Shown: positions 4,481 to 58,462 of the stretch, in pieces
How positions within the stretch are numbered: the first letter of the stretch is position 1
Layout of the letters: every line of letters begins with the position of its first letter
DNA from: Eutreptiella sp. 'Long Island Sound 2002'
Lineage: Eukaryota; Protista; Euglenida
NCBI GenBank assembly: GCA_964036045.1
Contig: OZ038378.1
Coordinates: 2,728,001 to 2,792,000 of the forward strand
DNA: 64,000 nt
Direction: 5' to 3'
Position numbers and translations under genes: made by a program
The notes under the pieces: generated by a model
The model's input: only the letters and a program-made list of their open reading frames with translations
Databases searched by the model: none
What the model was told of the DNA's origin: nothing

Positions 4481-4507
4481 ACGTTCTGAGTGCCTGCCTT
4501 GTTTCAG
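4481..4507 (+). other. Relic euglenid spliced-leader-like sequence upstream of the PAP gene
   Basis: ACGTTCTGAGTGCCTGCCTTGTTTCA matches the euglenid SL as I recall it (ACTTTCTGAGTGTCTATTTTTTTTCG) at 19/26 positions without gaps. It ends 18 nt before the ATG. Confidence 0.6.
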
Positions 4508-4525
4508 GTCGGCTCTTCTGTGGCC

Positions 4526-6100
4526 ATGCACCTGCATGCACTGGCCCTGTACTGGGCTGTGGCCCTCACAGACGCCATGTTTGACGGGATTTACCCGCAT
4601 CACGAGCATCCTCCCAACTGCAAACACGGTTGTGCCCTCTGGTCGGATTTGGCTGCAGATGGCTGCGCGGCGTCTCAGTCCGAAGCCAATGCGCTGTGGT
4701 CCGGAGGCGTGCCGCCCGCCGCGGCCTCACGATTCTGTGCAACCCCAGCCCACAATCCCGGCGAAAATGCGGGCTGGTGCTATTGCCGGGACAGCGGCTC
4801 TGAGGCATGGGGTTACTGCACGCCGTCTTTGCACTACCCTTCAGAGCTCGGGGTCTATCCCGTGAAAGACGGTGCTGTGGTCATTGCCTTCGTGACGCTC
4901 AGTCAGAATCAGTCCGATGGGGCGCCTGAGGTCACAGTCGAGCCTTCGCCTTCAAAGCCCGTGAACTCCTGGAGCATGTGCCCTGCTGGCGGCACTGCCA
5001 CCCACCGAGTCATGCACTTTGTTTTCTTGGGAGGCCTCGCTCCCTCTGTGCTCTACAAATACCGTGTGAGAAGTGGGTCCCCAGAGGCCCCCTGGAGCGA
5101 TTTTGGTACTTTCGTGAGTCTGCCGGAGGCTGGCGCCGCCACACCGTTCACCTTTGCGATTTGGGCAGATATGGGGGTGTACTCCTGGAACAATATGGAC
5201 AGTGTAATTGCAAACTTTGAGGCTCGAACCATCGCATTCGCCGCGCACATTGGGGACCATGGCTACGACATTGGGGATCTTGGGCGTGGGGACGGCTATT
5301 TCGATGCGATCTCTGCCATGTACACCAAAGGGCTCTTCGTACCGGGCGTTGGGAATCATGAGTACTACCACGACCATTTCCATAGGTACGACGCATATAC
5401 GAGTGGGATCGCGAAGTACAACCCGTCGCATTCTCAAAAATACTACAGTCTCAACATCGGCCAGCTGCATCTCATTGTTCTGGATTCCACGCCATATTTT
5501 GACATGCCGGGCAGCGACAAGGCCCAGCAAAGGGAGTGGTTGGAAGCGGATTTGAAGCAGGTGAACCGGACGCGCACGCCTTGGATCCTGATGACAGCTC
5601 ATCACCCGTTGTACTGCTCCTCCATCACTTTCTATGACGATGACGCCAAGGCACAGCGCTACGGGGCCAACTATTCCAGCCAAGGGGGCTTCCAAGGATG
5701 CGTGGGATCGGGGGAGGAGCAGGTGGCTGCCATGCGAGCGGACTGGGAGCCGCTCATGCTGGCATATGGTGTGGACGTCTACATGTGTGGGCACGAGCAT
5801 AACTATGAGTCCATTTACCCTGTGGCCAAAGGGAAGCGGATACAGAGCAGTTTCACGGACCCCCGTGCCCCCGTACACATAGTCAGCGGTGCTGGAGGTG
5901 CCCCAACGTTGGACCAGTTCGGCCCTCCCGGGCCATGGACACGGTTGCAGCTCAATAACGCCTGGAGCTACTCCAAAGTGACGGTGCTCGGGGCACATGC
6001 ACTGAAGTGGCAGCAATATTTCAACAGTTATTATGGGGGAGGGCTCGCTGACGAGTTTGTTATAACCCAAACTGCACACGGACCGTTCAGAGGGAATTGA
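4526..6100 (+). CDS. Secreted purple acid phosphatase (ACP7/PAP-like metallophosphoesterase) with N-terminal Cys-rich kringle-like module; intronless
   Basis: All five PAP motif blocks are present (DMG, GDHGY, GNHE, TAHH, GHEH), preceded by an FN3-like PAP N-domain (...YKYRVRSG...WS...F). The hydrophobic N-terminus MHLHALALYWAVALTDA looks like a signal peptide. ATG 4526 follows a TTGTTTCAG acceptor, so the ORF-track start at 4490 is not used. Confidence 0.92.
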   Translation: MHLHALALYWAVALTDAMFDGIYPHHEHPPNCKHGCALWSDLAADGCAASQSEANALWSGGVPPAAASRFCATPAHNPGENAGWCYCRDSGSEAWGYCTPSLHYPSELGVYPVKDGAVVIAFVTLSQNQSDGAPEVTVEPSPSKPVNSWSMCPAGGTATHRVMHFVFLGGLAPSVLYKYRVRSGSPEAPWSDFGTFVSLPEAGAATPFTFAIWADMGVYSWNNMDSVIANFEARTIAFAAHIGDHGYDIGDLGRGDGYFDAISAMYTKGLFVPGVGNHEYYHDHFHRYDAYTSGIAKYNPSHSQKYYSLNIGQLHLIVLDSTPYFDMPGSDKAQQREWLEADLKQVNRTRTPWILMTAHHPLYCSSITFYDDDAKAQRYGANYSSQGGFQGCVGSGEEQVAAMRADWEPLMLAYGVDVYMCGHEHNYESIYPVAKGKRIQSSFTDPRAPVHIVSGAGGAPTLDQFGPPGPWTRLQLNNAWSYSKVTVLGAHALKWQQYFNSYYGGGLADEFVITQTAHGPFRGN

Positions 6101-8274: not shown

Positions 8275-11200
8275 GGCCATTGCACTTGGGCCATTAACTT
8301 CAGCCATGCACTTGGGCCATTAACTTTAGCCATGCACTTGGGCCATGAACTTTAGCCATGCACTTGGGCCATTAACTTCAGCCATGCACTTGGGCCATTA
8401 ACTTCAGCCATGCACTTGGGCCATTAACTTTAGCCATGCACTTGGGCCATGAACTTTAGCCATGCACTTGGGCCATTAACTTTAGCCATGCACTTGGGCC
8501 ATTAACTTTAGCCATGCACTTGGGCCATGAACTTTAGCCATGCACTTGGGCCATTAACTTAAGCCATGCACTTGGGCCATTAACTTTAGCCATGCACTTG
8601 GGCCATGAACTTTAGCCATGCACTTGGGCCATGAACTTAAGCCATGCACTTGGGCCATTAACTTCAGCCATGCACTTGGGCCATTAACTTTAGCCATGCA
8701 CTTGGGCCATGAACTTAAGCCATGCACTTGGGCCATTAACTTAAGCCATGCACTTGGGCCATTAACTTTAGCCATGCACTTGGGCCATGAACTTTAGCCA
8801 TGCACTTGGGCCATGAACTTTAGCCATGCACTTGGGCCATTAACTTTAGCCATGCACTTGGGCCATGAACTTTAGCCATGCACTTGGGCCATGAACTTAA
8901 GCCATGCACTTGGGCCATTAACTTAAGCCATGCACTTGGGCCATTAACTTAAGCCATGCACTTGGGCCATGAACTTTAGCCATGCACTTGGGCCATTAAC
9001 TTTAGCCATGCACTTGGGCCATGAACTTAAGCCATGCACTTGGGCCATTAACTTAAGCCATGCACTTGGGCCATTAACTTTAGCCATGCACTTGGGCCAT
9101 GAACTTAAGCCATGCACTTGGGCCATTAACTTAAGCCATGCACTTGGGCCATTAACTTTAGCCATGCACTTGGGCCATGAACTTTAGCCATGCACTTGGG
9201 CCATGAACTTAAGCCATGCACTTGGGCCATTAACTTCAGCCATGCACTTGGGCCATTAACTTTAGCCATGCACTTGGGCCATGAACTTTAGCCATGCACT
9301 TGGGCCATTAACTTTAGCCATGCACTTGGGCCATGAACTTAAGCCATGCACTTGGGCCATTAACTTCAGCCATGCACTTGGGCCATTAACTTTAGCCATG
9401 CACTTGGGCCATTAACTTAAGCCATGCACTTGGGCCATTAACTTTAGCCATGCACTTGGGCCATGAACTTTAGCCATTTGCGTGGGCCATTAACTTAAGC
9501 CATGCACTTGGGCCATGAACTTAAGCCATGCACTTGGGCCATTAACTTAAGCCATGCACTTGGGCCATTAACTTAAGCCATGCACTTGGGCCATTAACTT
9601 AAGCCATGCACTTGGGCCATTAACTTAAGCCATGCACTTGGGCCATTAACTTAAGCCATGCACTTGGGCCATGAACTTTAGCCATGCACTTGGGCCATTA
9701 ACTTTAGCCATGCACTTGGGCCATTAACTTCAGCCATGCACTTGGGCCATTAACTTAAGCCATGCACTTGGGCCATTAACTTTAGCCATGCACTTGGGCC
9801 ATGAACTTTAGCCATTTGCGTGGGCCATTAACTTAAGCCATGCACTTGGGCCATGAACTTAAGCCATGCACTTGGGCCATTAACTTAAGCCATGCACTTG
9901 GGCCATTAACTTAAGCCATGCACTTGGGCCATTAACTTAAGCCATGCACTTGGGCCATTAACTTAAGCCATGCACTTGGGCCATTAACTTAAGCCATGCA
10001 CTTGGGCCATGAACTTTAGCCATTTGCGTGGGCTATTAACTTAAGCCATGCACTTGGGCCATGAACTTAAGCCATGCACTTGGGCCATTAACTTAAGCCA
10101 TGCACTTGGGCCATTAACTTAAGCCATTGCACTTGGGCCATTAACTTAAGCCATGCACTTGGGCCATGAACTTTAGCCATTTGCGTGGGCCATTAACTTA
10201 AGCCATGCACTTGGGCCATGAACTTAAGCCATGCACTTGGGCCATTAACTTAAGCCATGCACTTGGGCCATTAACTTAAGCCATGCACTTGGGCCATTAA
10301 CTTAAGCCATGCACTTGGGCCATTAACTTAAGCCATGCACTTGGGCCATTAACTTAAGCCATGCACTTGGGCCATTAACTTTAGCCATGCACTTGGGCCA
10401 TTAACTTCAGCCATGCACTTGGGCCATGAACTTTAGCCATGCACTTGGGCCATGAACTTAAGCCATGCACTTGGGCCATTAACTTAAGCCATGCACTTGG
10501 GCCATTAACTTTAGCCATGCACTTGGGCCATTAACTTTAGCCATGCACTTGGGCCATTAACTTCAGCCATGCACTTGGGCCATTAACTTCAGCCATGCAC
10601 TTGGGCCATGAACTTTAGCCATGCACTTGGGCCATGAACTTTAGCCATTTGCGTGGGCCATTAACTTAAGCCATGCACTTGGGCCATGAACTTAAGCCAT
10701 GCACTTGGGCCATTAACTTAAGCCATGCACTTGGGCCATTAACTTCAGCCATGCACTTGGGCCATTAACTTAAGCCATGCACTTGGGCCATTAACTTTAG
10801 CCATGCACTTGGGCCATTAACTTTAGCCATGCACTTGGGCCATTAACTTAAGCCATGCACTTGGGCCATTAACTTTAGCCATGCACTTGGGCCATTAACT
10901 TTAGCCATGCACTTGGGCCATTAACTTCAGCCATGCACTTGGGCCATTAACTTCAGCCATGCACTTGGGCCATGAACTTTAGCCATGCACTTGGGCCATG
11001 AACTTAAGCCATGCACTTGGGCCATTAACTTCAGCCATGCACTTGGGCCATTAACTTAAGCCATGCACTTGGGCCATTAACTTTAGCCATGCACTTGGGC
11101 CATTAACTTCAGCCATGCACTTGGGCCATTAACTTCAGCCATGCATTTGGGCCATGAACTTTAGCCATGCACTTGGGCCATTAACTTAAGCCATGCACTT

Positions 11201-12930
11201 GGGCCATTAACTTCAGCCATGCACTTGGGCCATTAACTTTAGCCATGCACTTGGGCCATGAACTTTAGCCATGCACTTGGGCCATTAACTTTAGCCATGC
11301 ACTTGGGCCATGAACTTAAGCCATGCACTTGGGCCATTAACTTCAGCCATGCACTTGGGCCATTAACTTTAGCCATGCACTTGGGCCATTAACTTAAGCC
11401 ATGCACTTGGGCCATTAACTTAAGCCATGCACTTGGGCCATTAACTTCAGCCATGCACTTGGGCCATTAACTTTAGCCATGCACTTGGGCCATTAACTTA
11501 AGCCATGCACTTGGGCCATTAACTTAAGCCATGCACTTGGGCCATTAACTTAAGCCATGCACTTGGGCCATTAACTTAAGGCCAGTTATCTTACCTTAAT
11601 TTCAGGTTGGGCCATTAACTTTAGCCATTTGCGTGGGCCATGAACTTAAGCCATGCACTTGGGCCATTAACTTAAGCCATGCACTTGGGCCATTAACTTT
11701 AGCCATGCACTTGGGCCATTAACTTAAGCCATGCACTTGGGCCATTAACTTCAGCCATGCACTTGGGCCATTAACTTTAGCCATGCACTTGGGCCATTAA
11801 CTTAAGCCATGCACTTGGGCCATTAACTTAAGCCATGCACTTGGGCCATTAACTTCAGCCATGCACTTGGGCCATTAACTTTAGCCATGCACTTGGGCCA
11901 TTAACTTAAGCCATGCACTTGGGCCATTAACTTAAGCCATGCACTTGGGCCATTAACTTAAGCCATGCACTTGGGCCATTAACTTAAGGCCAGTTATCTT
12001 ACCTTAATTTCAGGTTGGGCCATTAACTTTAGCCATTTGCGTGGGCCATGAACTTAAGCCATGCACTTGGGCCATTAACTTAAGCCATGCACTTGGGCCA
12101 TTAACTTTAGCCATGCACTTGGGCCATTAACTTAAGCCATGCACTTGGGCCATTAACTTCAGCCATGCACTTGGGCCATTAACTTAAGCCATGCACTTGG
12201 GCCATTAACTTTAGCCATTTGCGTGGGCCATTAACTTAAGCCATGCACTTGGGCCATGAACTTAAGCCATGCACTTGGGCCATTAACTTCAGCCATGCAC
12301 TTGGGCCATTAACTTCAGCCATGCACTTGGGCCATTAACTTTAGCCATGCACTTGGGCCATGAACTTAAGCCATGCACTTGGGCCATTAACTTCAGCCAT
12401 GCACTTGGGCCATTAACTTCAGCCATGCACTTGGGCCATTAACTTAAGCCATGCACTTGGGCCATTAACTTAAGCCATGCACTTGGGCCATTAACTTAAG
12501 CCATGCACTTGGGCCATTAACTTAAGCCATGCACTTGGGCCATTAACTTAAGCCATGCACTTGGGCCATTAACTTAAGCCATGCACTTGGGCCATTAACT
12601 TAAGCCATGCACTTGGGCCATTAACTTAAGCCATGCACTTGGGCCATTAACTTAAGCCATGCACTTGGGCCATTAACTTAAGCCATGCACTTGGGCCATT
12701 AACTTTAGCCATGCACTTGGGCCATTAACTTAAGCCATGCACTTGGGCCATTAACTTAAGCCATGCACTTGGGCCATTAACTTAAGCCATGCACTTGGGC
12801 CATTAACTTAAGGCCAGTTATCTTACCTTAATTTCAGGTTGGGCCATTAAGCCAAGCCATGCATTTCGTCCTTAAAATTCAGCCATTCAACTGGGGCCAG
12901 TGAGGTTAGCCATTTACTTGGGCAATGAAA
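8275..12930 (+). repeat. 26-bp tandem satellite, consensus AGCCATGCACTTGGGCCAT(T/G)AACTT(T/A/C), ~175 copies
   Basis: Uninterrupted 26-nt period from ~8275 to ~12850, degenerating to 12930. Recurrent variant monomers and three 44-bp interrupted monomers at 11581, 11989 and 12813. Confidence 0.98.
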
Positions 12931-13518
12931 TCACCTCGAAGAGAGGTTGTTAGATCAAGCGCAGGCGCGGGCGTCATATACCCCCCTTTTTTGGGGTCAT
13001 TCGCGTAGCATACCCCAAGGCATGATATTGGATGTCCAACCCCTTGTAAAATCATTATTTTGCCCAATAAGACCATCCCCCAATGGATTTTTTTATTCTG
13101 AGGCCTCTATCCCCTAAAACTGGATATCACTTTTTTGGGGGGTGGGTGGGGGGGGGGTGTTGCGGGGGGGGGTCAAAAGTTTTTGCTGAGAAGGCTCCAA
13201 GCAGTGGGGAAGCAAACCGCTAACACACAACTGATGGTTGAATGGTAACACAGCAGACCGCAGGAATCATGGTCGGCGGTTCGAACCCAGGTCGGCCGCA
13301 AAGAGTGGCGGCGGCGGCGGCAGCATATGCCAGCTGCATTACCATTCGGCCACTACTTGAATATTAGAACAAAGGAGTCCCCACTGCTTGGGGCCGTGTC
13401 TGCCACTGACAAAAAACCCAAACTGTGTGTTTCTGTCTGACTGACTGCTGGCCTGGCTCAGGGACTGCTTGGCTGACTGTCAACCTCTCTTCGAGGTGCA
13501 CTGCTGAAGGCAATAGAA
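12931..13518 (+). mobile_element. Non-autonomous Helitron/Helentron-like element, short subfamily (588 bp)
   Basis: Starts TCACCTCGAAGAGAGGTTG. An 18-bp perfect inverted copy lies at 13481-13498, followed by a TGCT-GAA-GGCA hairpin and ATAGAA. The flanks GGGCAATGAAA and TTTAGGCACACACTTGG rejoin into one satellite monomer, with no TSD. Confidence 0.8.
13228..13300 (+). promoter_or_regulatory. tRNA-derived Pol III A/B-box cassette inside the element
   Basis: A box TGGTTGAATGG (13235-13245) and B box GGTTCGAACCC (13278-13288) at tRNA-like spacing (43 nt). A full cloverleaf is not evident. Confidence 0.65.
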
Positions 13519-13670
13519 TTTAGGCACACACTTGGTGCATCAACTTTCGCCATGCCCTTAGGACATGAACTTTAGCCGTGCACTTGGGCCATTAACTTTA
13601 GCCTTGCACTTGGGCCATGAACTTTAGCCATGCACTTGGGCCATGGACTTTACCCATGCACTTGGGCCGT
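13519..13670 (+). repeat. Continuation of the 26-bp satellite (degenerate) beyond the insertion
   Basis: About 5-6 diverged monomers of GCCATGCACTTGGGCCATGAACTTTA. Confidence 0.9.
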
Positions 13671-14301: not shown

Positions 14302-14435
14302 GCTTAAGTTAATGGCCCAAGTGCATGGGCTAGGTTAATGCCCCAAGGGAATGGCTACAGTTCATGGCCGAAGTGCAGGGCTAATGTTAATGGCCCAAGT
14401 GCATGGTTTAATTTAATGGCCCAGGTGCATGGCCC
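14302..14435 (-). repeat. Inverted, diverged copies of the 26-bp satellite monomer
   Basis: TTAAGTTAATGGCCCAAGTGCATGG and four to five diverged neighbours are the reverse complement of the satellite unit. Confidence 0.85.
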
Positions 14436-14957
14436 CTGTGCAAGCTGCACAAGATTCCATTCAGAGACGTGGTGCGCGTGCCTGGTGGCATACACATCAG
14501 CAACTCAATCGGGGGATAGTGTACCATCTCTGTGGCTACGAACACTGTTCTGGCTCCTGGAGACCGGGATGGGGTATTGGATGCTACAAGGGGGTTGTAC
14601 CCGCGCTTTGGACAAGTATCGTCTGGGTGGAGACGAGAGGAGTGCTTGGAGTCCAGGTTTGTTGACACATGCACTCCAAGCCTGGTTGGGTGCAAAATTC
14701 ATGGCTCTGCCTCCTCCTCGCAAGCACCCCTATCACAAGCCGGAAAGGATGCAACGAAGGCAGTGTGAAGGTAGCTGAAGCCAGATCACGGGTCGAAACC
14801 CAAGCTTTTGTGACCCCCGAACCCCTACCCACGGCTCCATCTTGGAGATAGGCCCTAAAGAACCAAAAGAATAATGACTATGGTCACCACTAAAATTGGG
14901 TGATTCACAAATGGCGAATCATAGGATTCCCCGCTCGCCAACCGGTGCGGTACATTA

Positions 14958-15208
14958 CCCCCGTCCATCCTTGGTGTACAAAATCTTTTTAGGCTTTCTC
15001 ATGCATTGCGGTGTGTATGTGTATGCCCGGGTATGCAATATAGACGAGTAGGTGAAAGGGGACATCTCTCGGAACATTAACCCAGCCCATCAAAAGTGCG
15101 GTATGATAAGCCACTGTAGACGCTGATACAAATTGTCAATTGTAGTAAAGAAAATGTGGCAGTCCACCCACTTGGTGGTTCATTTGGCAATTCTCATGAC
15201 CTTCAAAA
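14958..15208 (-). repeat. Right arm (first part) of the long inverted repeat
   Basis: Reverse complement of ~13705-13958; resumes at 25470. Confidence 0.85.
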
Positions 15209-16769
15209 TCACCTCGAAGAGAGGTTGCGGGGTTGTTAGATCAAGCGCAGGCGCGAGCGTCGTATACCCCCCTTTTTTGGGGTCGTTCGCGTAGCATACC
15301 CCAATGTATGGTTTCTAACGTCTAACCCCCTGTAAAATCATCATTTTAGGACCAAAAATGATCCCCCAATGATTTTTTGGATTTTGACCCCCGTACCCCC
15401 CCGCACCGGGGTACCCTTTTTTGAGGGGGGGGGGTGGGGGGGGTGGGGGGGGGGTCAAAACTGCTTTGTGTATTGTGGCCGCTGTGTGTGTATTTGGACC
15501 TGGGTCCTGAAGAACTTTTTTCTTGTATATGGACCCTCTAACCCGTGGCGGGGGTCCCGGATCCCAACTCCAGGTACCCCCAGGCACCCCCCCCTATATG
15601 GCCCCTCGCCAATGAGGACTTAGCCGTTTTTCACGCTGGATAGGCTGTTTAGTGGCACGTGAAGGTTTTTTGAAATTCGAATTTTAGTGACTACCTTCCG
15701 TTGCCCCTGCGATTGGTTTGGGTGATCATTTGGTGACAATACGGGTACTTGAGCACCCATGGGGACCCACGTAGTGGCTGCTAGGCCTATGTAGCCCTTG
15801 CCATGGGCCCTCCGAAAGCCCCAAAATTGCTGTTGCGTAGGCTGTTTAGTGACACTTGAAAGTTTTTCACATTTCCACTTTTTCCGAAACCCTTCTGTTG
15901 CCCCTAGGATGGGTTTGGGTGATCATTTGGTGACAATGCGGGTGCTTGAGCACCCATGGGGGCCCACGTAGTGGCCACTGGGCCCATCTAGCCCGAACCA
16001 TGGGCCCCCCAAAAGCTTCAAATTGCTGTTTGTAGGTGGTTCAATGGTATTTGGTGTGTGCACAAACTGCTTTCCAGCACAACAAGCAGTTTTCCACCCT
16101 CTGCAGGTCAAAAATGGAAAATTTTTGCAAAATCACCTCGCAGAGGTTGTTAGATCAAAGCCAGGCAGGCGTATATATGGGAAAACGCCACATACCCCGC
16201 CATTTTGGCCTTTTTGGGCCTATTCGCGTACCCTACCCCAAGGGGTTGAATTGTTAGTTTAACCCCTTGTAAAATCATTATTTTGTCCAATAAACGCATC
16301 CCCCAATGAGTTTTTGGTCCGGACCCCCCCAGACCCCCCCCACTTGAAACCCACTTTTTTGAGGTTTTAAGGGAGGGGGGGGGATAGGGGGGGGTCAAAA
16401 ATGTCGAAAAAATGACCCCCCTTTGTTTGGGTCATTTTTTGGGTCGAAAATCATGAATCTTTTGGTTTTTTTCGATTTTGAGCCGAAAAAGTGTTTCCGG
16501 GTCCCGACTCCATAGGGTTTGTATGGGGCGGAGTGGGACGAGCGCAGTTTATGCATTTTTTGGCCATTTTTGCTATGTTGGCGATTTTGGCAACCTCGGT
16601 GACCCCGTGGTACCCACTCCAAGGGGTGCGAGTGGGGATGTTGTGACAGTATATGCCTCCTAGGATATGGAAGAACGTTTTTTGCACTCTGTAGCCTTGC
16701 CCAGGGCTGGTGAAATGCCTTGCCAAAGACGCGAAATGGCCGTTTCCACCAATAATGGCCTAGTGAATG

Positions 16770-18295
16770 GGCCAGTACACAACCTGCTCATGCAGTTTTT
16801 CACCTTGGGCAGCTCAAACATCGAAGTTTTTGAAACTTGTTTTTTGATATTGTGACCACCTAAAATGACCATCCAAGGTATATAAAGCATGTTTTAGACC
16901 GTATTTACGTGTTTCTCACCCTATTTGGGTATTAGGTCCGGGGGGGGGGGTCTCCCAAGGGATTGGTACACAACCTGCTTATGCAGTTTTTCAACCTCAG
17001 CAGCTTAAAAATCGAAGTTTTTGAAACTTGTTTTTTTGATATTGTGACCACCCAAAATGACCATCCAAGGTACGTAAAGCATGTTTTAGGCTGTATTTGC
17101 GTGTTTTTTCATCCTATTTGGGTATTAGGTGCGGGGGGGGGGTCTCCCAAGGGATTGGTACACAACCTGCTTATGCAGTTTTTCACCCTGGGCAGCTCAA
17201 AAATCGAAGTTTTCGAAACTTGTTTTTTTGATATTGTGACCACCCAAAATGACCATCCAAGGTACGTAAAGCATGTTTTAGGCCGTATTTACGTGTTTCT
17301 CACCCTATTTGGGTATTAGGTCCGGGGGGGGGGGTCTCCCAAGGGATTGGTACACAACCTGCTTATGCAGTTTTTCAACCTCGGCAGCTCAAAAATCGAA
17401 GTTTTCGAAACTTGTTTTTTTGATATTGTGACCACCCAAAATGACCATCCAAGCTATGTAAAGCATGTTTTAGGCCGTATTTACGTGTTTCTCACCCTAT
17501 TTGGGTATTAGGTCCGGGGGGGGGGGGTCTCCCAAGGGATTGGTACACAACCTGCTTATGCAGTTTTTCAACCTCGGCAGCTCAAAAATCGAAGTTTTCG
17601 AAACTTGTTTTTTTGATATTGTGACCACCCAAAATGACCATCCAAGGTACGTAAAGCATGTTTTAGGCTGTATTTGCGTGTTTTTTCATCCTATTTGGGT
17701 ATTAGGTGGGGGGGGGGGTCTCCCAAGGGATTGGTACACAACCTGCTTATGCAGTTTTTCAACCTCGGCAGCTCAAAAATCGAAGTTTTCGAAACTTGTT
17801 TTTTTGATATTGTGACCACCCAAAATGATCATCCAAGCTATGTAAAGCATGTTTTAGGCTGTATTTGCGTGTTTTTCATCCTATGTGGGTATTAGGTCCG
17901 GGGGGGGGGGGGGGGTCTCCCAAGGGATTGGTACACAACCTGCTTATGCAGTTTTTCACCCTGGGCAGCTCAAAAATCGAAGTTTTCGAAACTTGTTTTT
18001 TTGGTATTGTGACCACCCAAAATGACCATCCAAGGTATGTAAAGCATGTTTTAGGCCGTATGTACATGTTTTTCACCCTATTTGGGTATTAGTTCCGGGG
18101 GGTCGGGGGCTCCCAAGGGATTGGCACACAACCTTATGCAGTTTTCCACCCTGGGCAGCTCAAAAATCGAAGTTTTCGAAACTTGTTTTTTTGATACCGT
18201 GATCACCTAAAATGATCATCCAAGGTATGCAAAGCATGTTTTAGCCCGTATTTATGTAGTTTCCATCCTATTTTGGGTGTGTTTTGCTCGGGGTA
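16770..18295 (+). repeat. ~192-bp central tandem repeat, unit 1 (8 copies; 9, 6 and 4 copies in units 2-4)
   Basis: CCCAAGGGATTGG recurs at 16954, 17146, 17338, 17531, 17722, 17919 and 18112. Length differences are mostly in a poly-G tract. Confidence 0.95.
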
Positions 18296-18587
18296 GATTC
18301 TCTGCGAGGTGGACTTGCCGAAGGCAACAGAACCACCGCGCAGAGGTTGTTAGGTCAAAGCCAGGCAGGCGTATATATGGGGAAAACGCCACATACCCCC
18401 CCATTTTGGCCTTTTTGGGCCTATTCGCGTACCCTACCCCAAGGGGTTGAATTGTTAGTTTAACCCCTTGTAAAATCATTATTTTGTCCAATAAACGCAA
18501 CCCCCCATGAGTTTTTGGTCCGGACCCCCCTAGACCCCCCCCACTTGAAACCCACTTTTTTGAGGTTTTCAAGGAGGGGGGGGGGGT

Positions 18588-19270
18588 GGGTTGGGTTGGG
18601 TTGGGTTGGGTCAAGGCCTCGCCTGGTCGCCTACCCACGGTCCGCGCCGCCTTCCCTGCGGGACCCGACTGGGCGGCCGTACCCGGGTGTCCGGTCACAA
18701 GGCCTACCGGACTGTTGACCGCCCCCAGACCCCGCGGTGGCGCTCGCGGGCGGGAGATGCCGCCGTGCCTGTGTGTATGTGCCCTTGTGTGTCTGAGGGG
18801 GGGGGGGGGGGGGCTGTGGCACACCTGCTTGCTCCATTGTTGTTCGGCGTTGGCGCACATGGCGCGGGGAAGTGTGTGCCTGGTGCTCCAGGCCCCGGCA
18901 GGGAGGCTGGAGAGCCTGACGCTGAGCCCGCCGGGGGAGATGTGGGCCTGGGCTCGCAACCTCCACGTCACAAGGACATGCTACCCAACCACTCCACGAC
19001 TGCCTATTGGCACGGGAAGGCGGTGGTACGTGGCACGACTGGGGTCAGACCCGCACTCCTTGACTGCCTTAGGCACAGGTGGTGCTGCCTCGCGGGCTGG
19101 GTCCGGCTCCCACGGCCGAGGGCGTACCCTGGGCAGATGGAGGGGCACCAAGGCGCAGAGTGTGCTTCCCTGCCCTGGGTGCCACCAGTGCTGGCTGCAC
19201 TGGCTGCGGCGCTACAGCCCGCGTAGACGAGGGGGCCCAGAGGGCACCACACCCGAATGGCCTCTCCGTT
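18588..19270 (-). mobile_element. ~680-bp GC-rich insertion with (GGGTT)n end, probable retroposon fragment, in array unit 2 only
   Basis: Absent from units 1, 3 and 4. It sits in the G-run, flanked by G11-12TGGG on both sides (possible TSD), with a (AACCC)4 tail on the minus strand. Confidence 0.6.
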
Positions 19271-22200
19271 GGGGGGGGGGGGTGGGGGGGGGGTCAAAAA
19301 ATGACCCCCCTTTTTTTGGGTCGAAAATCATGAATCTTTTGGTTTTTTTCGATTTTGAGCCGAAAAAGTGTTTCCGGGTCCCGACTCCATAGGGTTTGTA
19401 TGGGGCGGAGTGGGACGAGCGCAGTTTATGCATTTTTTGGCCATTTTTGCTATGTTGGCGATTTTGGCAACCTCGGTGACCCCGTGGTACCCACTCCAAG
19501 GGGTGCGAGTGGGGATGTTGTGACAGTATATGCCTCCTAGGATATGGAAGAACGTTTTTGCACTCTGTAGCCTTGCCCAGGGCTGGTGAAATGCCTTGCC
19601 AAAGACGCGAAATGGCCGTTTCCACCAATAATGGCCTAGTGAATGGGCCAGTACACAACCTGCTCATGCAGTTTTTCACCTTGGGCAGCTCAAACATCGA
19701 AGTTTTTGAAACTTGTTTTTTTGATATTGTGACCACCTAAAATGACCATCCAAGGTATGTAAAGCATGTTTTAGGCCGTATTTACGTGTTTCTCACCCTA
19801 TTTGGGTATTAGGTCCGGGGGGGGGGGGTCTCCCAAGGGATTGGTACACAACCTGCTTATGCAGTTTTCAACCTCAGCAGCTTAAAAATCGAAGTTTTTG
19901 AAACTTGTTTTTTGATATTGTGACCACCCAAAATGACCATCCAAGGTACGTAAAGCATGTTTTAGGCTGTATTTGCGTGTTTTTTCATCCTATTTGGGTA
20001 TTAGGTGGGGGGGGGGGGTCTCCCAAGGGATTGGTACACAACCTGCTTATGCAGTTTTTCACCCTGGGCAGCTCAAAAATCGAAGTTTTCGAAACTTGTT
20101 TTTTTGATATTGTGACCACCCAAAATGACCATCCAAGGTACGTAAAGCATGTTTTAGGCCGTATTTACGTGTTTCTCACCCTATTTGGGTATTAGGTCCG
20201 GGGGGGGGGTCTCCCAAGGGATTGGTACACAACCTGCTTATGCAGTTTTTCAACCTCGGCAGCTCAAAAATCGAAGTTTTCGAAACTTGTTTTTTTGATA
20301 TTGTGACCACCCAAAATGACCATCCAAGCTATGTAAAGCATGTTTTAGGCCGTATTTACGTGTTTCTCACCCTATTTGGGTATTAGGTCCGGGGGGGGGG
20401 TCTCCCAAGGGATTGGTACACAACCTGCTTATGCAGTTTTTCAACCTCGGCAGCTCAAAAATCGAAGTTTTCGAAACTTGTTTTTTTGATATTGTGACCA
20501 CCCAAAATGACCATCCAAGCTATGTAAAGCATGTTTTAGGCCGTATTTACGTGTTTCTCACCCTATTTGGGTATTAGGTCCGGGGGGGGGGGTCTCCCAA
20601 GGGATTGGTACACAACCTGCTTATGCAGTTTTTCAACCTCGGCAGCTCAAAAATCGAAGTTTTCGAAACTTGTTTTTTTGATATTGTGACCACCCAAAAT
20701 GACCATCCAAGGTACGTAAAGCATGTTTTAGGCTGTATTTGCGTGTTTTTTCATCCTATTTGGGTATTAGGTGGGGGGGGGGGGTCTCCCAAGGGATTGG
20801 TACACAACCTGCTTATGCAGTTTTTCAACCTCGGCAGCTCAAAAATCGAAGTTTTCGAAACTTGTTTTTTTGATATTGTGACCACCCAAAATGATCATCC
20901 AAGCTATGTAAAGCATGTTTTAGGCTGTATTTGCGTGTTTTTCATCCTATGTGGGTATTAGGTCCGGGGGGGGGGGGGGGGTCTCCCAAGGGATTGGTAC
21001 ACAACCTGCTTATGCAGTTTTTCACCCTGGGCAGCTCAAAAATCGAAGTTTTCGAAACTTGTTTTTTTGGTATTGTGACCACCCAAAATGACCATCCAAG
21101 CTATGTAAAGCATGTTTTAGGCCGTACGTACATGTTTTTCACCCTATTTGGGTATTAGTTCCGGGGGGTCGGGGGCTCCCAAGGGATTGGCACACAACCT
21201 TATGCAGTTTTCCACCCTGGGCAGCTCAAAAATCGAAGTTTTCGAAACTTGTTTTTTTGATACCGTGATCACCTAAAATGATCATCCAAGGTATGCAAAG
21301 CATGTTTTAGCCCGTATTTATGTAGTTTCCATCCTATTTTGGGTGTGTTTTGCTCGGGGTAGATTCTCTGCGAGGTGGACTTGCCGAAGGCAACAGAACC
21401 ACCGCGCAGAGGTTGTTAGGTCAAAGCCAGGCAGGCGTATATATGGGGAAAACGCCACATACCCCCCCATTTTGGCCTTTTTGGGCCTATTCGCGTACCC
21501 TACCCCAAGGGGTTGAATTGTTAGTTTAACCCCTTGTAAAATCATTATTTTGTCCAATAAACGCAACCCCCCATGAGTTTTTGGTCCGGACCCCCCTAGA
21601 CCCCCCCCACTTGAAACCCACTTTTTTGAGGTTTTCAAGGAGGGGGGGGGGGTGGGGGGGGGTCAAAAAATGACCCCCCTTTTTTTGGGTCGAAAATCAT
21701 GAATCTTTTGGTTTTTTTCGATTTTGAGCCGAAAAAGTGTTTCCGGGTCCCGACTCCATAGGGTTTGTATGGGGCGGAGTGGGACGAGCGCAGTTTATGC
21801 ATTTTTTGGCCATTTTTGCTATGTTGGCGATTTTGGCAACCTCGGTGACCCCGTGGTACCCACTCCAAGGGGTGCGAGTGGGGATGTTGTGACAGTATAT
21901 GCCTCCTAGGATATGGAAGAACGTTTTTTGCACTCTGTAGCCTTGCCTAGGGCTGGTGAAATGCCTTGCCAAAGACGCGAAATGGCTGTTTCCACCAATA
22001 ATGGCCTAGTGAATGGGCCAGTACACAACCTGCTCATGCAGTTTTTCACCTTGGGCAGCTCAAACATCGAAGTTTTTGAAACTTGTTTTTTTGATATTGT
22101 GACCACCTAAAATGACCATCCAAGGTATGTAAAGCATGTTTTAGACCGTATTTACGTGTTTCTCACCCTATTTGGGTATTAGGTCCGGGGGGGGGGGTCT

Positions 22201-24600
22201 CCCAAGGGATTGGTACACAACCTGCTTATGCAGCTTTTCACCTTGGACAGCTCAAAAATCGAAGTTTTCGAAACCTGTTTTTTTTGATATTGTCATCACG
22301 TAAAATGACCATCCAAGCTATGTAAAGCATGTTTTAGGCTGTATTTACCTGTTTTTCACCTTATTTGGGTATTGGGTTGGGGGGGGGGTCTCCCAAGGGA
22401 TTGGTACACAACCTGCTTGTGCAGTTTTTCAACCTCAGCAGCTTAAAAATCGAAGTTTTTGAAACTTGTTTTTTTGATATTGTGACCACCCAAAATGACC
22501 ATCCAAGGTACGTAAAGCATGTTTTAGGCTGTATTTGCGTGTTTTTTCATCCTATTTGGGTATTAGGTGGGGGGGGGGGTCTCCCAAGGGATTGGTACAC
22601 AACCTGCTTATGCAGTTTTTCAACCTCAGCAGCTCAAAAATCGAAGTTTTCGAAACTTGTTTTTTTGATATTGTGACCACCCAAAATGACCATCCAAGGT
22701 ACGTAAAGCATGTTTTAGGCTGTATTTGCGTGTTTTTCATCCTATGTGGGTATTAGGTCCGGGGGGGGGGGTCTCCCAAGGGATTGGTACACAACCTGCT
22801 TATGCAGTTTTTCACCCTGGGCAGCTCAAAAATCGAAGTTTTCGAAACTTGTTTTTTTGGTATTGTGACCACCCAAAATGACCATCCAAGGTATGTAAAG
22901 CATGTTTTAGGCCGTATGTACATGTTTTTCACCCTATTTGGGTATTAGTTCCGGGGGGTCGGGGGCTCCCAAGGGATTGGCACACAACCTTATGCAGTTT
23001 TCCACCCTGGGCAGCTCAAAAATCGAAGTTTTCGAAACTTGTTTTTTTGATACCGTGATCACCTAAAATGATCATCCAAGGTATGCAAAGCATGTTTTAG
23101 CCCGTATTTATGTAGTTTCCATCCTATTTTGGGTGTGTTTTGCTCGGGGTAGATTCTCTGCGAGGTGGACTTGCCGAAGGCAACAGAACCACCGCGCAGA
23201 GGTTGTTAGGTCAAAGCCAGGCAGGCGTATATATGGGGAAAACGCCACATACCCCCCCATTTTGGCCTTTTTGGGCCTATTCGCGTACCCTACCCCAAGG
23301 GGTTGAATTGTTAGTTTAACCCCTTGTAAAATCATTATTTTGTCCAATAAACGCAACCCCCCATGAGTTTTTGGTCCGGACCCCCCTAGACCCCCCCCCA
23401 CTTGAAACCCACTTTTTTGAGGTTTTCAAGGAGGGGGGGGGGTCCGGGGGGGTCAAAAAATGACCCCTCCTTTTTTTGGGTCGAAAATCATGAATCTTTT
23501 GGTTTTTTTCGATTTTGAGCCGAAAAAGTGTTTCCGGGTCCCGACTCCATAGGGTTTGTATGGGGCGGAGTGGGACGAGCGCAGTTTATGCATTTTTTGG
23601 CCATTTTTGCTATGTTGGCGATTTTGGCAACCTCGGTGACCCCGTGGTACCCACTCCAAGGGGTGCGAGTGGGGATGTTGTGACAGTATATGCCTCCTAG
23701 GATATGGAAGAACGTTTTTTGCACTCTGTAGCCTTGCCCAGGGCTGGTGAAATGCCTTGCCAAAGACGCGAAATGGCTGTTTCCACCAATAATGGCCTAG
23801 TGAATGGGCCAGTACACAACCTGCTCATGCAGTTTTTCACCTTGGACAGCTCAAAAATCGAAGTTTTCGAAACTTGTTTTTTTTGATATTGTCATCACGT
23901 AAAATGACCATCCAAGCTATGTAAAGCATGTTTTAGGCCGTATTTACCTGTTTTTCACCTTATTTGGGTATTGGGTTGGGGGGGGGGTCTCCCAAGGGAT
24001 TGGTACACAACCTGCTTATGCAGTTTTTCAACCTCAGCAGCTTAAAAATCGAAGTTTTTGAAACTTGTTTTTTTGATATTGTGACCACCCAAAATGACCA
24101 TCCAAGGTACGTAAAGCATGTTTTAGGCTGTATTTGCGTGTTTTTTCATCCTATTTGGGTATTAGGGGGGGGGGGGGTCTCCCAAGGGATTGGTACACAA
24201 CCTGCTTATGCAGTCTTTCAACCTCGGCAGCTCAAAAATCGAAGTTTTCGAAACTTGTTTTTTTGATATTGTGACCACCCAAAATGATCATCCAAGCTAT
24301 GTAAAGCATGTTTTAGGCTGTATTTGCGTGTTTTTCATCCTATGTGGGTATTAGGTCCGGGGGGGGGGGGGGGTCTCCCAAGGGATTGGTACACAACCTG
24401 CTTATGCAGTTTTTCACTCTGGACAGCTCAAAAATCGAAGTTTTCGAACGTTGTTTTTTTGATATTGCGATCACCTAAAATGATCATCCAAGGTATGTAA
24501 AGCATGTTTTAGGCCGTATTCGCGTGTTTTTCACCCTATTTTTGGTTTGTGTTGCTCGGGGTAGATTCTCTGTGAGGTGGACTTGCCGAAGGCAATAGAA

Positions 24601-25437
24601 TTTTTTTTTTGATATTGTGACCACTTACAATGATGAAATATGCTATGTAAAGCATGTTTTAGACCCTCTTTGTGCGTTTTTCACCCTATTTGGCTGTGTG
24701 TGTGGGGGGGGGGGGGGGTACCAAGGGGTCTAGGGCACACAACCTGCTTATGCAGTTTTCAGGCCTCGGCAACTCAAAAATAGAAATTTCCGAAACTGAT
24801 TTTTTTGATACTTTGACCATCCAAAATGATCAAATATCCTATGTAAAGCATGTTTTGGACCCTGTTCATGTGTTTTTCACCCTATTTGGGTGTGGCGGGG
24901 GGGGGGGGGGTACCAAGGGGTCTAGGGCACACAACCTGCTTATGCAGTTTTCAGGCCTCGGCAGCTCAAAAATGGAAATTTCCGAAACTGATTTTTTTGA
25001 TACTTTGACCATCCAAAATGATCAAATATCCTATGTAAAGCATGTTTTGGACCCTCTTCGTGTGTTTTTCACCCTATTTGGGTGTGGGGGGGGGGGAGTA
25101 CCAAGGGGTCTAGGGCACACAGCCTGCTTACGCAGTTTTCAGGCCTCGGCAACTCAAAAATAGAAATTTCCGAAACTGATTTTTTTGATACTTTGACCAT
25201 CCAAAATGATCAAATATCCTATGTAAAGCATGTTTTGGACCCTCTTCGTGTGTTTTTCACCCTATTTGGGTGTGGCGGGGGGGGGAGTACCAAGGGGTCT
25301 AGGGCACACAACCTGCTTATGCAGTTTTTAGGCCTCGGCAACTCAAAAATAGAAATTTCCGAAACTGATTTTTTTGATACTTTGACCATCCAAAATGATC
25401 AAATATCCTATGTAAAGCATGTTTTGGCCCCTCTCCC
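24601..25437 (+). repeat. ~190-bp tandem repeat of the outer element (older homologous variant)
   Basis: CCAAGGGGTCTAGGGCAC recurs at ~24721, 24913, 25101 and 25290, and shares CACAACCTGCTTATGCAGTTTT...GTAAAGCATGTTTT with the 192-bp unit. Confidence 0.9.
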
Positions 25438-26529
25438 CTCTTCGAGGTGCCTTGCCGAAGGCAATAGAATTTTAGGGGTGCCTTGGGTGAAAGTACAATA
25501 CAATTGTTTGGATGTCTTGTCCAGTAAACAAGTCATTCTTCACCCATGAGGTCGCAACAAAGAACCACCAAACAACTACTGGGAGTGTTATGCCACAATG
25601 ACTTCTGAGAGTACTGCGTTGTGGTGTGCTGAAGTCCATCACAGTGCTGCAAGCCAACACACACAAAGCTCATTAGAGACCTGTGAGCACACCTTGATCA
25701 CCCCACATGAAACATGACCCCGTTTTTGGTACACCCGCCTTGTTGCCATCCATCCATCGGTGTAGCAAAACACAAGCATGTCTCCGTAGACACCCATAAC
25801 CAAGAACTACGGACCCACCTAGAAACAATGAAGGTAGTAGGCGGTCCATCGTGTGATGCAAGGTGGAGGTTTTGTACCCCATTTGTTCCCACTACAGACC
25901 AAGCAACGCAAGACACAAGCTTAGGGTATGATTCCCTACACCAATGAATACCTCGGCAACAGCCAACGGCTGTGGACTGAATTTCGGTGCATGTGTGTAG
26001 CGTGGTGGGGCACTTGTCTTTGCCTTATAGCCTAGCCGTATGCAGTGCAATGGCCTTGTACAACATTCTCATCTATGAGGCCCATTACACACGGACCATT
26101 TGACAATGGTCCGTGTGCTATGCGCAACCATTTCAGACTTGCCCACTGGAAGTAAACATATGTGACGGCAGTGCAAGCTGCCATAATTGCATTTTTTTTT
26201 GTGCATCGATATGCTTCTTTTTTCAATGGCACATGTCGATATGATGGGTGTAGCAATGTTGTGAGTGTGAGGAATGTACCTACTTTCAGAAGTTCATGCA
26301 ACTGAACAAAATGTGCACAATGCCAACCATTGCAACGTGGGTATTGGGGATGGCAAATCATTTTTGATACACCACCAGCATTCTTGCATACCTTACCATA
26401 CCCTCAAAGGTGTGTGTGTAAGCAATGTGGGTAAGCAACCCGGTCCATCTTGGGCAAAGAATGGCTCTTTTTGGCATAAATGGCGCAGATTTGAAAACTT
26501 GGATTTAGCAAGGGCACCACCTACCGCCT

Positions 26530-40900: not shown

Positions 40901-41859
40901 ATGTCGACACTTGCGTGGAACTAGTCTTTTTCAAGAAAAATCAATTTCAATATCCCATTTTTCATGGTCATGTTTTTGTATACATTTTAGTTCAAATTGT
41001 CGTGTCAATTCAACGGTAACATGTGTTGATGATCCAACGTAACATGTGGTGATGATCCGACGACCCTGTCACTTCACAGCTTCTGTGTGCTCTTGCTTCA
41101 CAATTTGTGCCCCCCCCCCCCCCCTCCCTCCTTCCCTAGAGAAGCACCCCAAGTAGACCAGAGTAGACCGCAAACCCTCCCTACAAAGCGCGTTGCATAA
41201 GGTGGAATCGGTGATTTCGGTGTTAACACATGTCAGTTCTCTTGTGCCAAACAAACAGTATTATCCCCACAAGTGTGGGTGTCAATACATTCAGCACAAT
41301 AATTCTCTTTGCACTCACCACAAACTGTGATGGTGGAGCGCTTTTGACAACACAAAGCACACCCGTTTGCCTCATCCTCTCCCTAATCTTGCGTGGCAGC
41401 TGAGTTGCTTTTATCAATCCAAAATTGCTTACGGCCCTTCAAAGCTGTATTCTTTCTTCCAATGAAGGGATGAATCCATATGAATCCATATCCCCAACTC
41501 GAGGGGCCACACAAATTTGTTCATTGTTAGTCCATATCGCCAGCTGAAGGGGCCACAGAAATCACCTCGAAGAGAGGTTGTTAGATCAAGCGCAGGCGCG
41601 GGCGTCCTATACCCCCCTTTTTTGGGGTCATTCGCGTAGCATACCCCAAGGCATGATATTGGATGTCCAACCCCTTGTAAAATCATTATTTTGCCCAATA
41701 AGACCATCCCCCAATGGTTTTTTGATTGTGAGGCCTCTATCCCCTAAAACTGGATATCACTTTTTTGGGGTGTGGGGGTGTGGGGGGGGGGTGTGGGGGG
41801 GGGGTCAAAAGTTTTTGCTGAGAAGGCTCTAAGCAGTGGGGAAGCAAACCGCTAACACA

Positions 41860-41936
41860 CAACTGATGGTTGAATGGTAACACAGCAGACCGCAGGAATC
41901 AAGGTCGGCGGTTCGAATCCTGGGCGGCCATTTTTT
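41860..41936 (+). promoter_or_regulatory. tRNA-like A/B-box cassette followed by a T6 Pol III terminator
   Basis: A box 41867-41877, B box GGTTCGAATCC 41910-41920, TTTTTT at 41931-41936. Confidence 0.65.
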
Positions 41937-41965
41937 GCGGCGGCGGCGGTGGCGGCGGCGGCATA

Positions 41966-42038
41966 TTTACTGTACCGGGGTTCGAACCGCCGACCAAAAA
42001 GTCAACAGGTAGCTGCATTACCATTCGGCCACTGCTTC
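41966..42038 (-). pseudogene. tRNA-Asn-like degenerate cassette, convergent with the plus-strand cassette
   Basis: The minus strand reads GTGGCCGAATGGTAATGCAGCTAC-CTGTTGA-CTTTTTGGTCGGCGGTTCGAACCCC: A box, a CT-GTT-GA anticodon-like loop and a B box. The anticodon stem does not pair. Confidence 0.55.
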
Positions 42039-42699
42039 AATACCAGGACATTAGAGTCCCCAGTGCTTGGGTTCGTGTCTGCCACTGACAAAAAACCCAG
42101 ACTGTGTGTTTCTGTCTGACTGACTGCTGGCCTGGCTCAAGGACTGCTTGGCTGACTGTCAACCTCTCTTCGAGGTGCACTGCCGAAGGCAATAGAATTT
42201 GTCGATGATGAGTCCCCAACTCAAGGGACCATACAAATTTATGGATTATGAGTCCATATCCCCAACTCAAGGGGCCACCCAATTTGTGGATTGTTTGGCG
42301 TACATACGGGGTGAGGCAACACAAGGAGGGAGTTGAAAATGGTCATGGGTGGCGAATGGGTCCAAAAAGATGCCCGACGCTAACACTCCCCCCAAGGCTT
42401 GTCTAGTCTCCGAGGCTTGCCCTTTCCCTAAACAACTCATATAGTGCAGACAAAAATACCATGTTCCATGGACATCCGCCAAAGAACTATGGCAGCAAGA
42501 GTATTCGGATCATGCACCCACTCAGCCATGTGCTCCAAAGAATATCCAAAGCCCCAACCGGACTGGAAAGGCAAGCATGAAATGGGATTTGCAGCACCCC
42601 CTTCAAAATGATACAGAAGCAAAATGGCAATTGGACCAGGCTCCGCATCTAGGGAATGTGCAAAATTTCGGGAGAGGGTGCATCTCTTTTGCGTGGACA

Positions 42700-51163: not shown

Positions 51164-52093
51164 GTGACCTCCGTTGCCCCTCTGTTGTCTGCTGCTTTGT
51201 TCCGGAGCTGACAAAAAGAAATACAAAGCACAGGGGTTGCGTGAGGAACTTGATCCACCTGCCCCTGCGGATCCACAAACCTACGCCTACAGGGGGCTGC
51301 AGTTTGTTCGCCTACACAGTGAAGATATGTGATAATTCGGCTCAAAGAAGGTTGTTAGATCATGGACAGTCGCAAGCGCCATACACCCCCATTTCTGGGG
51401 GGTTATCCACATCACATAAGGGGCATAAGGGTCTGTGGTCAAACTTAGTAAATTTTTTTTACATTAACTTTACCATCTTATGGGGTTTGTTACTAAGTTC
51501 CGAAACTTAGCCCCCAAAAACTTTTCAACAAAGTTTTTGCCTTGGCAATTGTTTTTTCACAAAGTAAAGAATTTAGTGAAAAAAGCACCCTTGTACTAAG
51601 TTTGGGAAATTTAACAACAAAATTTTCATTCCTCCCCGCTTTGAGGACCGAGAGACGGCAGGGGTTATGTAGCATTTTTGATTGCTCCCCACTCTGGGAA
51701 CCCCGAGTTGGTGGGGTTTATGTCGCCTTTTTGATTCCTCGCTGCTCTGGGGACCTTGAGACTGCAAGGCTTACGTACATCTCGACTAGTCAGGACCTAT
51801 TTTTAAGGCCGGCTGGGATGCATTGGAGGAGCACTAATCCGCAACGCCGCACAATTGCTCTGGACCATTTGGACTATGCTTAGGAGCATTATGTTGTCTG
51901 CTCCACTTGTTTTTGATTGCTCCAACGCGTGAATACCTTTGCCTTAAGTCTGACCCCCTATACGACAAGCCACACATAGTTGGTGTAGAGGAAGTTTTTG
52001 GGTGCTTTGGCGGGATTGAAATGAAGCGGGGGCTAGAGCTCTTCCACCTCCTCCCAATCCTCACCCCCATGCGGAACCTTTTTTGTTTTTGCC

Positions 52094-55726: not shown

Positions 55727-56070
55727 TCACCTTGAAGAGAGGTTGTTAGATCAAGCGTAGGCGTGAGCATCGTATACCCCCCCTTTTTGGGGGTCGTTCG
55801 TGTAGCATACCCCAATGTATGGTTTCTGACGTCCAACCCCTTTGAAAATCATCATTTTAGGACCAAAAATGATCCCCCAATGATTTTTTTGGATTTTGAC
55901 CCCCGTACCCCCCTGCACCTGGGTACCACTTTTTTGGGGGGCGGGGGGGTTCAAAACTTCTTTGCGTATTGTGGCCGCTGTGTGTGCATTTGGACCTACG
56001 TCCTAAAGAACTTTTTTCTTGTATATGGACCCCCTAACCCATGGCGGGGGTCCCGGGTCTCAACTCTAGG
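55727..56070 (+). mobile_element. 3'-truncated copy of the Helitron/Helentron-like family
   Basis: GAAAAA|TCACCTTGAAGAGAGGTTGTTAGATCAAGC; colinear with 15209-15590 for ~340 bp, with no 3' hairpin found. Confidence 0.8.
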
Positions 56071-56332
56071 TACTGTCTTCTGCTGCTCTGGTTCCTGGTT
56101 CACATGGAAGTTGGCCATAACCCCTCCCCCCCCCAAATGGGGGGGATAACACCGCCCCCAGGTGTGATAATCCTCCCCGATGGGGGGATAAAACCACCCC
56201 TTTTGGAATGCCTTACATGATCTGCTTTTTAAATCCTGAAGAGTGCAAAAAAAAAAGGGAGACAATTGTAAGTATGAAAATGGTACAGAAACAGCATGAA
56301 ATCAACAAAGGGACAGATCTGTTGCGTCCATT

Positions 56333-56335
<3 letters not shown>

Positions 56336-56369
<34 letters not shown>
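56336..56369. repeat. (TG)n microsatellite
   Basis: About 17 tandem TG. Confidence 0.95.
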
Positions 56370-56371
<2 letters not shown>

Positions 56372-58404: not shown

Positions 58405-58430
58405 CCTTTCTCAGTGTCCATTTATTTACT
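58405..58430 (+). other. Relic euglenid spliced-leader-like sequence upstream of the TBC gene
   Basis: CCTTTCTCAGTGTCCATTTATTTACT matches the recalled SL 26-mer at 20/26 positions without gaps and ends 32 nt before the ATG. A polypyrimidine tract plus CAG (~58377-58399) lies just upstream. Confidence 0.68.
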
Positions 58431-58462
58431 TATTATCCCTGATTGTTTTCTCTCTAGTTTCC

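Follow-up and report, generated by a model that had tools for sequence, protein, structure and literature searches.

The window, that is, the whole stretch of 64,000 nt analysed here, carries nine units of one family of mobile elements, which we count as five or six insertion events and which make up 18.6% of its length. Units were delimited by aligning the copies to the window with BLAST; every one of them lies on the + strand, to which their coordinates refer. All units start with T(C)CACC behind AAA, and the complete ones close with A(T/C)AGAA ahead of TTT. The original prediction placed five 5' ends at 12931, 15209, 16133, 41562 and 55727, and we found AAA|TCACCT(C/T)G at each of them. It also described 3' ends made of a subterminal inverted repeat, a hairpin and AGAA before TTT, and this anatomy is present at the four ends that abut TTT (13518, 24600, 25469 and 42197). 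Three more such ends (18332, 21398 and 23188) abut the 5' end of the next unit, so that the window holds seven TGC(C/T)GAAGGCA-A(T/C)AGAA 3' ends (0.31 expected from shuffles). The subterminal repeat is an exact inverted complement of the 5' end in six matches (0.04 expected from shuffles). The small elements of the family encode no proteins. Long uninterrupted ORFs of the window, for a purple acid phosphatase (4490–6100) and a RabGAP-TBC protein (58322–60430), are on the same strand as the element copies.

Copy A (12931–13518) is a complete 588-bp element of the short (S) subfamily, inserted at the frayed edge of a 26-bp satellite. It opens with TCACCTCGAAGAGAGGTTG directly behind AAA. Its 5' asymmetric terminal inverted repeat (12931–12949) starts 1 nt from the end and forms its own hairpin, ACCTC-GAAGA-GAGGT; the 3' subterminal inverted repeat (13481–13498) is the exact complement of 12932–12949 and ends 20 nt before the 3' end. 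This inverted complement is followed by TGCTGAAGGCA, then by ATAGAA and then by the flanking TTT. The 3' hairpin (TGCT-GAA-GGCA) and the 6-nt tail ATAGAA together occupy 13502–13518, and the element stops before TTT. The satellite itself counts 175 copies, with a short inverted patch, at 8276–12812, 13529–13668 and 14305–14432; the clean array has no free AAATTT inside. Copy B (41562–42197, 636 bp) is a second complete S element, 93% alike to copy A over aligned columns, and its host is a repeat of 43-bp monomers (41464–41545 and 42198–42290) whose word depth in the sequencing runs is as high as that of the element's ends. The S body has two convergent box-B-like stretches, GGTTCGAA(C/T)C, around a GGC repeat (41860–42040 in copy B; also 13220–13300 in copy A). 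A tRNA cargo was considered and rejected, as neither ARAGORN nor Rfam calls any tRNA there.

Copy C is an older element split by a nest of other units. Its 5' part (15209–16132) consists of the head and 197-bp repeats, and its 3' part (24601–25469) of a 192-bp array, the 3' repeat, the hairpin and an AGAA/TTTT junction. The nest between them (16133–24600) is made of four units of the long (L) subfamily fused head to tail. Unit D (16133–18332), with AAAA as its 5' flank, has a head, about eight monomers of 192 bp and a tail. Unit E (18333–21398) is joined head-to-tail to D (AGAA/CCACC) and is followed in the same manner by unit F (21399–23188), whose head is identical to that of unit E over 258 bp, and by unit G (23189–24600), whose 3' end abuts a T run inside the monomer of copy C. 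The remaining traces are copy H (55727–56073), a 347-bp 5' fragment only, which lies behind AAAAA and is 85% alike to the head of copy C, and a scrap that corresponds to head positions 5–66 (51341–51401; 79% alike). A (GT)n microsatellite lies just past copy H at 56330–56370.

A 5' head of ~250 bp is common to all subfamilies (72–80% alike between subfamilies in the alignment) and closes with a G run and then TCAAAA. The bodies differ, being either the S body or tandem arrays of four to nine monomers of 190–192 bp (units C–G). Unit E has an extra G+C-rich segment of 688 bp (18585–19272), which sits in the G run of the head and is missing from D, F and G. The 268-aa ORF of this segment has no Pfam match; the segment may be captured DNA or another insertion.

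Target site and empty sites

We obtained more copies by translating an ORF that crosses the head and using it to search a protein collection. All 143 matches were spurious ORF products of a single ENA assembly, from which we fetched ten loci of ~20 kb each (L002–L011, 194 kb). Genes of other mobile elements adjoin the family there: a DDE_1 ORF and retroelement ORFs (RVT_1, RNase_H, zf-CCHC, Exo_endo_phos) occur at L004:19047–19991, L005:1–6317 and L010:1–5630 and 14663–19506.

The family was originally described as inserting without target duplication, and four empty sites within the window do rejoin exactly, with neither duplication nor loss. The flanks of copy A rejoin in register with the 26-bp satellite, those of copy B with a sister 43-bp monomer, and those of the D–G nest with sister 190-bp monomers. 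The empty site of copy C is a paralogous arm (13858–13673, – strand), which matches the rejoined 15209/25469 flanks at 91% over 186 bp. The paralogous site, CAAAA^TTTTAGG, is uninterrupted and has four A and four T, as in the occupied site, which rules out a target-site duplication (TSD) hidden by shifted boundaries. The fetched loci added two further exact empty sites, bringing the total to six, none with a TSD. Because the empty sites keep AAATTT, AAA and TTT belong to the host and are excluded as parts of the element.

With the window and the ten loci pooled, independent 5' flanks are AAA in 20 out of 21 cases (TAA in the other) and 3' flanks are TTT in 16 out of 17. A is also frequent at position –4 and T at position +4. 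The sole exception to TTT is a TGA next to an old S copy (10023–10598) that lies between exons of a gamma-glutamyltranspeptidase gene (L011:348–18508), on the same strand as the gene. Boundaries were also visible when Logan contigs of four runs were aligned to copy B: hundreds of them break at 41559 and 42200, just outside AAA and TTT; the sequence beyond the breaks is unrelated, and the contigs carry three organism labels. The shuffle controls, the independent assembly and the four sequencing runs rule out chance or artefact as the origin of these patterns.

The initial reading of the target was A^T. This call is ambiguous by one base: since the element and the 3' flank both start with T, AAAT^TT fits equally well, and this one-base shift also accommodates the T^T rule of Helitron-like elements of the HLE2 type, whose insertion is said to take place between T and T (PMC11417382). 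Variants of the HLE2 target include TTTT^T/C (PMC3627910) and TNAT^A (PMC5148889). Under either boundary, the A-rich left flank is atypical for HLE2.

A strict, two-sided and palindromic AAA^TTT counts against an assignment to HLE2 for a second reason, namely that it is the signature of Spy, a DDE element of the PHIS superfamily that the original prediction had overlooked. Spy inserts exactly between AAA and TTT, leaves AAATTT intact at empty sites and makes no TSD (PMC4122938), all of which we see here. A Spy-like or other cut-and-paste element would have a dimeric DDE transposase that recognises palindromic AAATTT in double-stranded DNA and inserts bluntly, and the inverted repeats of 12–20 nt could serve as its binding sites. 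The ends of the elements, however, speak against it.

Anatomy of the element ends

Each element has a first T and then a repeat of 12–20 nt that folds into its own hairpin. The offset of this 5' repeat from the 5' end is 0–1 nt in all 21 complete copies, and in 20 of the 21 the 3' repeat, with 11–20 matches to the 5' repeat, ends 19–21 nt from the 3' end. The 3' hairpin (TGCC-GAA-GGCA; 4–5 bp with a GAA loop) stands 3–4 nt behind the 3' repeat, and six more bases, ending in AGAA, finish the element. As DNA, the 5' repeat folds into ACCTC-GAAGA-GAGGT in the S and ACCTC-GCA-GAGGT in the L subfamily, with the arms kept and the loop changed. Energies of the 5' hairpin are modest (z –1.2 to –1.6), and the case for it therefore rests on the conservation of its arms. 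The two repeats also co-vary between subfamilies: GAAGAGAGG goes with CCTCTCTTC, and GCAGAG with CTCTGC.

The true termini are not inverted repeats of one another (5' TCACCTCG versus TTCTATTG, the reverse complement of the 3' end), and the contrast between TCACC... at the 5' end and ...ATAGAA at the 3' end speaks against a DDE cut-and-paste enzyme. In Spy, the termini are genuine inverted repeats that start with GGANNNNG, and the enzyme is a DDE transposase (PMC4122938), whereas the ends here are asymmetric, carry a hairpin tail and lack both the terminal GGANNNNG motif and any GGA. Moreover, the conserved 20-nt tail with its hairpin lies outside the 3' repeat and yet is the element's own at every empty site. 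Spy is reported only from invertebrate animals (PMC4122938), and neither the window nor the loci yielded a PHIS transposase. We rate the probability of a Spy-like origin as low, on account of the asymmetric termini, the outer hairpin tail and the missing GGANNNNG.

Hairpins at both ends, cleavage a few nucleotides 3' of the right hairpin, a fixed target and no TSD also recall the logic of IS608-type elements. One could imagine another, undescribed single-strand HUH transposon, distinct from those with a Rep-helicase (RepHel), whose cleavage is guided by hairpins as in IS200/IS605. IS200/IS605 elements, however, fix their left flank only, and here both flanks are fixed. We know of no such family in eukaryotes. 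The precise geometry of the ends is, moreover, that of Helitron2 (PMC3627910), and we regard this alternative as unlikely.

A link to the nonconventional introns of euglenids was also rejected. Their boundary code is 5'-N3-CDG ... CHG-N5-6 | R (PMC12501133); positions 4–6 of the element read CCT, and the bases 6–9 nt from its 3' end read GCA/CAA.

Relationship to Helitron2 and other Helitron-like elements

Published criteria for Helitron2 comprise a 5' T, a 5' repeat that lies 0–2 bp from the end and forms a hairpin, and a 3' repeat ~20–30 bp from the end, upstream of a hairpin (PMC3627910). The canonical HLE2 structure of the HELIANO paper has the same end layout (PMC11417382). HLE2 elements never end in CTRR, usually start with T, have asymmetric terminal inverted repeats and a 3' hairpin, and make no TSD (PMC3627910, PMC11417382, PMC4067079). 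The elements described here share the 5' repeat offset, the 5' hairpin, the position of the 3' repeat and hairpin, and the lack of a TSD. We conclude, with a probability of roughly 70%, that the family belongs to the non-autonomous Helitron-like elements and, among these, to the HLE2 (Helitron2/Helentron, HINE-like) type. The original prediction had reached a rolling-circle, Helitron-like reading, which the end anatomy fits best. It had also proposed a hybrid of Helitron and Helentron with a 'non-canonical' AGAA end; this part falls away, because each end feature matches the published definition of Helitron2/HLE2 and a hybrid is needless.

A close likeness is to non-autonomous Helitron2 elements such as Helitron-1N1_CRe of Chlamydomonas (Bao & Jurka 2013, PMC3627910), with their hairpin-forming 5' repeat 0–2 nt from the end, their 5' T and, directly upstream of a hairpin, a 3' repeat ~20–30 nt from the end. 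They also resemble our family in a shared 5' region of ~200 bp, a size of ~0.6 kb, the lack of a TSD and a fixed target of A/T only, but that target is TTTT^T/C instead of AAA^TTT (or AAAT^TT), and the host here is a euglenid.

Helentron-associated HINE/DINE-1 elements (Thomas et al. 2014, PMC4067079) likewise have palindromic subterminal inverted repeats, a 3' stem-loop and no target modification; their central tandem repeats expand, their copy number is very high, and they seed satellite-like arrays. Central tandem repeats of this kind are present in C–G as the 190–192-bp arrays, and the S subfamily is without them. Compared with HINE/DINE-1, the tail is more compact here, with the repeat ending 20 nt rather than 38–60 nt from the end; the 5' flank is rich in A and not in T, the ends have no variable T run, and no Helentron with an APE endonuclease is known here.

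FoHeli1/2 of Fusarium oxysporum (PMC5148889) are HLE2 elements with asymmetric terminal inverted repeats, a TC start and a target other than T^T (TNAT^A). A one-base ambiguity of the boundary, joined ends and tandem copies were observed for them as well; unlike our elements, they are autonomous, with a known RepHel, and use another target. With canonical Helitrons (HLE1) the family shares the 5' TC, the 3' hairpin, the lack of a TSD and the A^T reading of the target. It departs from HLE1 in that the CTRR 3' end is absent, the end being A(T/C)AGAA, and in that inverted repeats are present.

Head-to-tail arrays

Exact head-to-tail junctions were found in three independent places. One is of the L/L kind, in the window (AGAA|CCACC), one S/S (AGAA|TCACC; L005:10735–10736) and one S/L (AGAA|TTACC; L010:10649–10650). 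The two units in L005 are only 81% alike, one of them matches a copy from another locus at 93%, and the L010 junction unites two different subfamilies. The junctions therefore join unlike units and must have been made by insertion exactly at the end of a resident element; rolling-circle concatemers are ruled out as the origin of these arrays. Tandem insertions are known for Helitrons and their relatives (PMC5148889). Head-to-tail junctions alone do not prove rolling-circle copying. The reuse of resident ends is consistent with an enzyme able to recognise element ends and nick them. The reused site agrees with the target at only five of six bases, and sites of this kind are seldom used elsewhere.

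In the window array, the tails of D, E and F are identical and the heads of E, F and G nearly so. This likeness suggests one original dimer, which may then have grown by unequal exchange within the 190-bp arrays. All copies in the window are on the + strand, but a same-strand bias was rejected, as the pooled ratio for the window and the ten loci is about 11 to 4 and not significant.

Possible mode of transposition

The junctions admit another explanation of how a joined form could integrate. An AGAA|TCACC circle moved by a tyrosine or serine recombinase (Crypton-like or IS607-like) could recombine with AAA|TTT through an AA core and leave no duplication. The left junction (AAA|T), the right junction (GAA|T) and the target (AAA|T) all share AA, as a 2-nt crossover core would leave, and once the ends are joined a repeat would stand on either side of the junction, much as binding arms do. 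The spacing between these arms, however, would be 24 nt and the crossover would lie next to one of them, a layout that to our knowledge is unlike recombinase core sites. The asymmetric arrangement of repeats and hairpin, moreover, is not described for Cryptons or IS607-type elements and is defining for Helitron2 (PMC3627910). We saw no recombinase gene in either the window or the loci and consider a recombinase-driven element highly improbable.

For the preferred HLE2 reading, we take as starting points the ends, the target, the lack of a TSD and the reuse of ends, all of which are read directly from the sequences, and propose the enzymatic steps as follows. A Rep(HUH)-helicase supplied in trans would nick one strand at AA^T, a step that the left junction (AAA^TCACC) has in common with the right one (AGAA^TTT) and with the target. 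Termination would be signalled by the hairpin together with the pairing of the repeats, as proposed for Helitron2 (PMC3627910). A single-stranded or circular copy, putatively joined as AGAA|TCACC, would then be released and placed into AAA^TTT of the target DNA.

We compared 30 long ORFs from the window and the loci with Rep, helicase, GIY-YIG and PHIS and found no match. Since neither the window nor the 194 kb of fetched loci, including their gene tables, contains a Rep-helicase gene, the link to RepHel is one that we infer. For one HLE2 family, a GIY-YIG domain is on record (PMC11417382). It is conceivable, if rather doubtful, that the mover belongs to a euglenid RepHel-GIY-YIG (SLX1-like) lineage and that the palindromic AAA^TTT reflects a new way of choosing or cutting the target, for example a second-strand or structure-specific cut by the fused nuclease or, more radically, that the mover is not a RepHel. 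A RepHel-GIY-YIG mover, if real, would define a distinct branch of HLE2 with its own integration chemistry.

Abundance and significance

The family is abundant well beyond the window. The 194 kb of other loci have about one extra copy per 15–20 kb, and in three DNA runs the word depths of head and tail are ~10^4 times the unique baseline, a figure to be read as an order of magnitude and not as a copy number. In metagenomes, one scan for related copies came back empty and another gave only a chance 25-mer match. The literature that we searched contains no description of Helitron-like elements in euglenids. The family is thus probably a new and very abundant member of HLE2/Helitron2, in a lineage for which that literature describes none.

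Its precise ends and target allow the family to be annotated exactly and can guide the way to its partner. That an HLE2-type element and the DDE-type Spy have the same AAA^TTT target without TSD is a small but real puzzle of target choice. Given the nesting of elements within each other, the head-to-tail arrays and the expandable 190-bp arrays, the family is a likely source of satellite-like DNA. Overall, we suggest that these elements are likely to feed both satellite-like DNA and genome growth in this euglenid.
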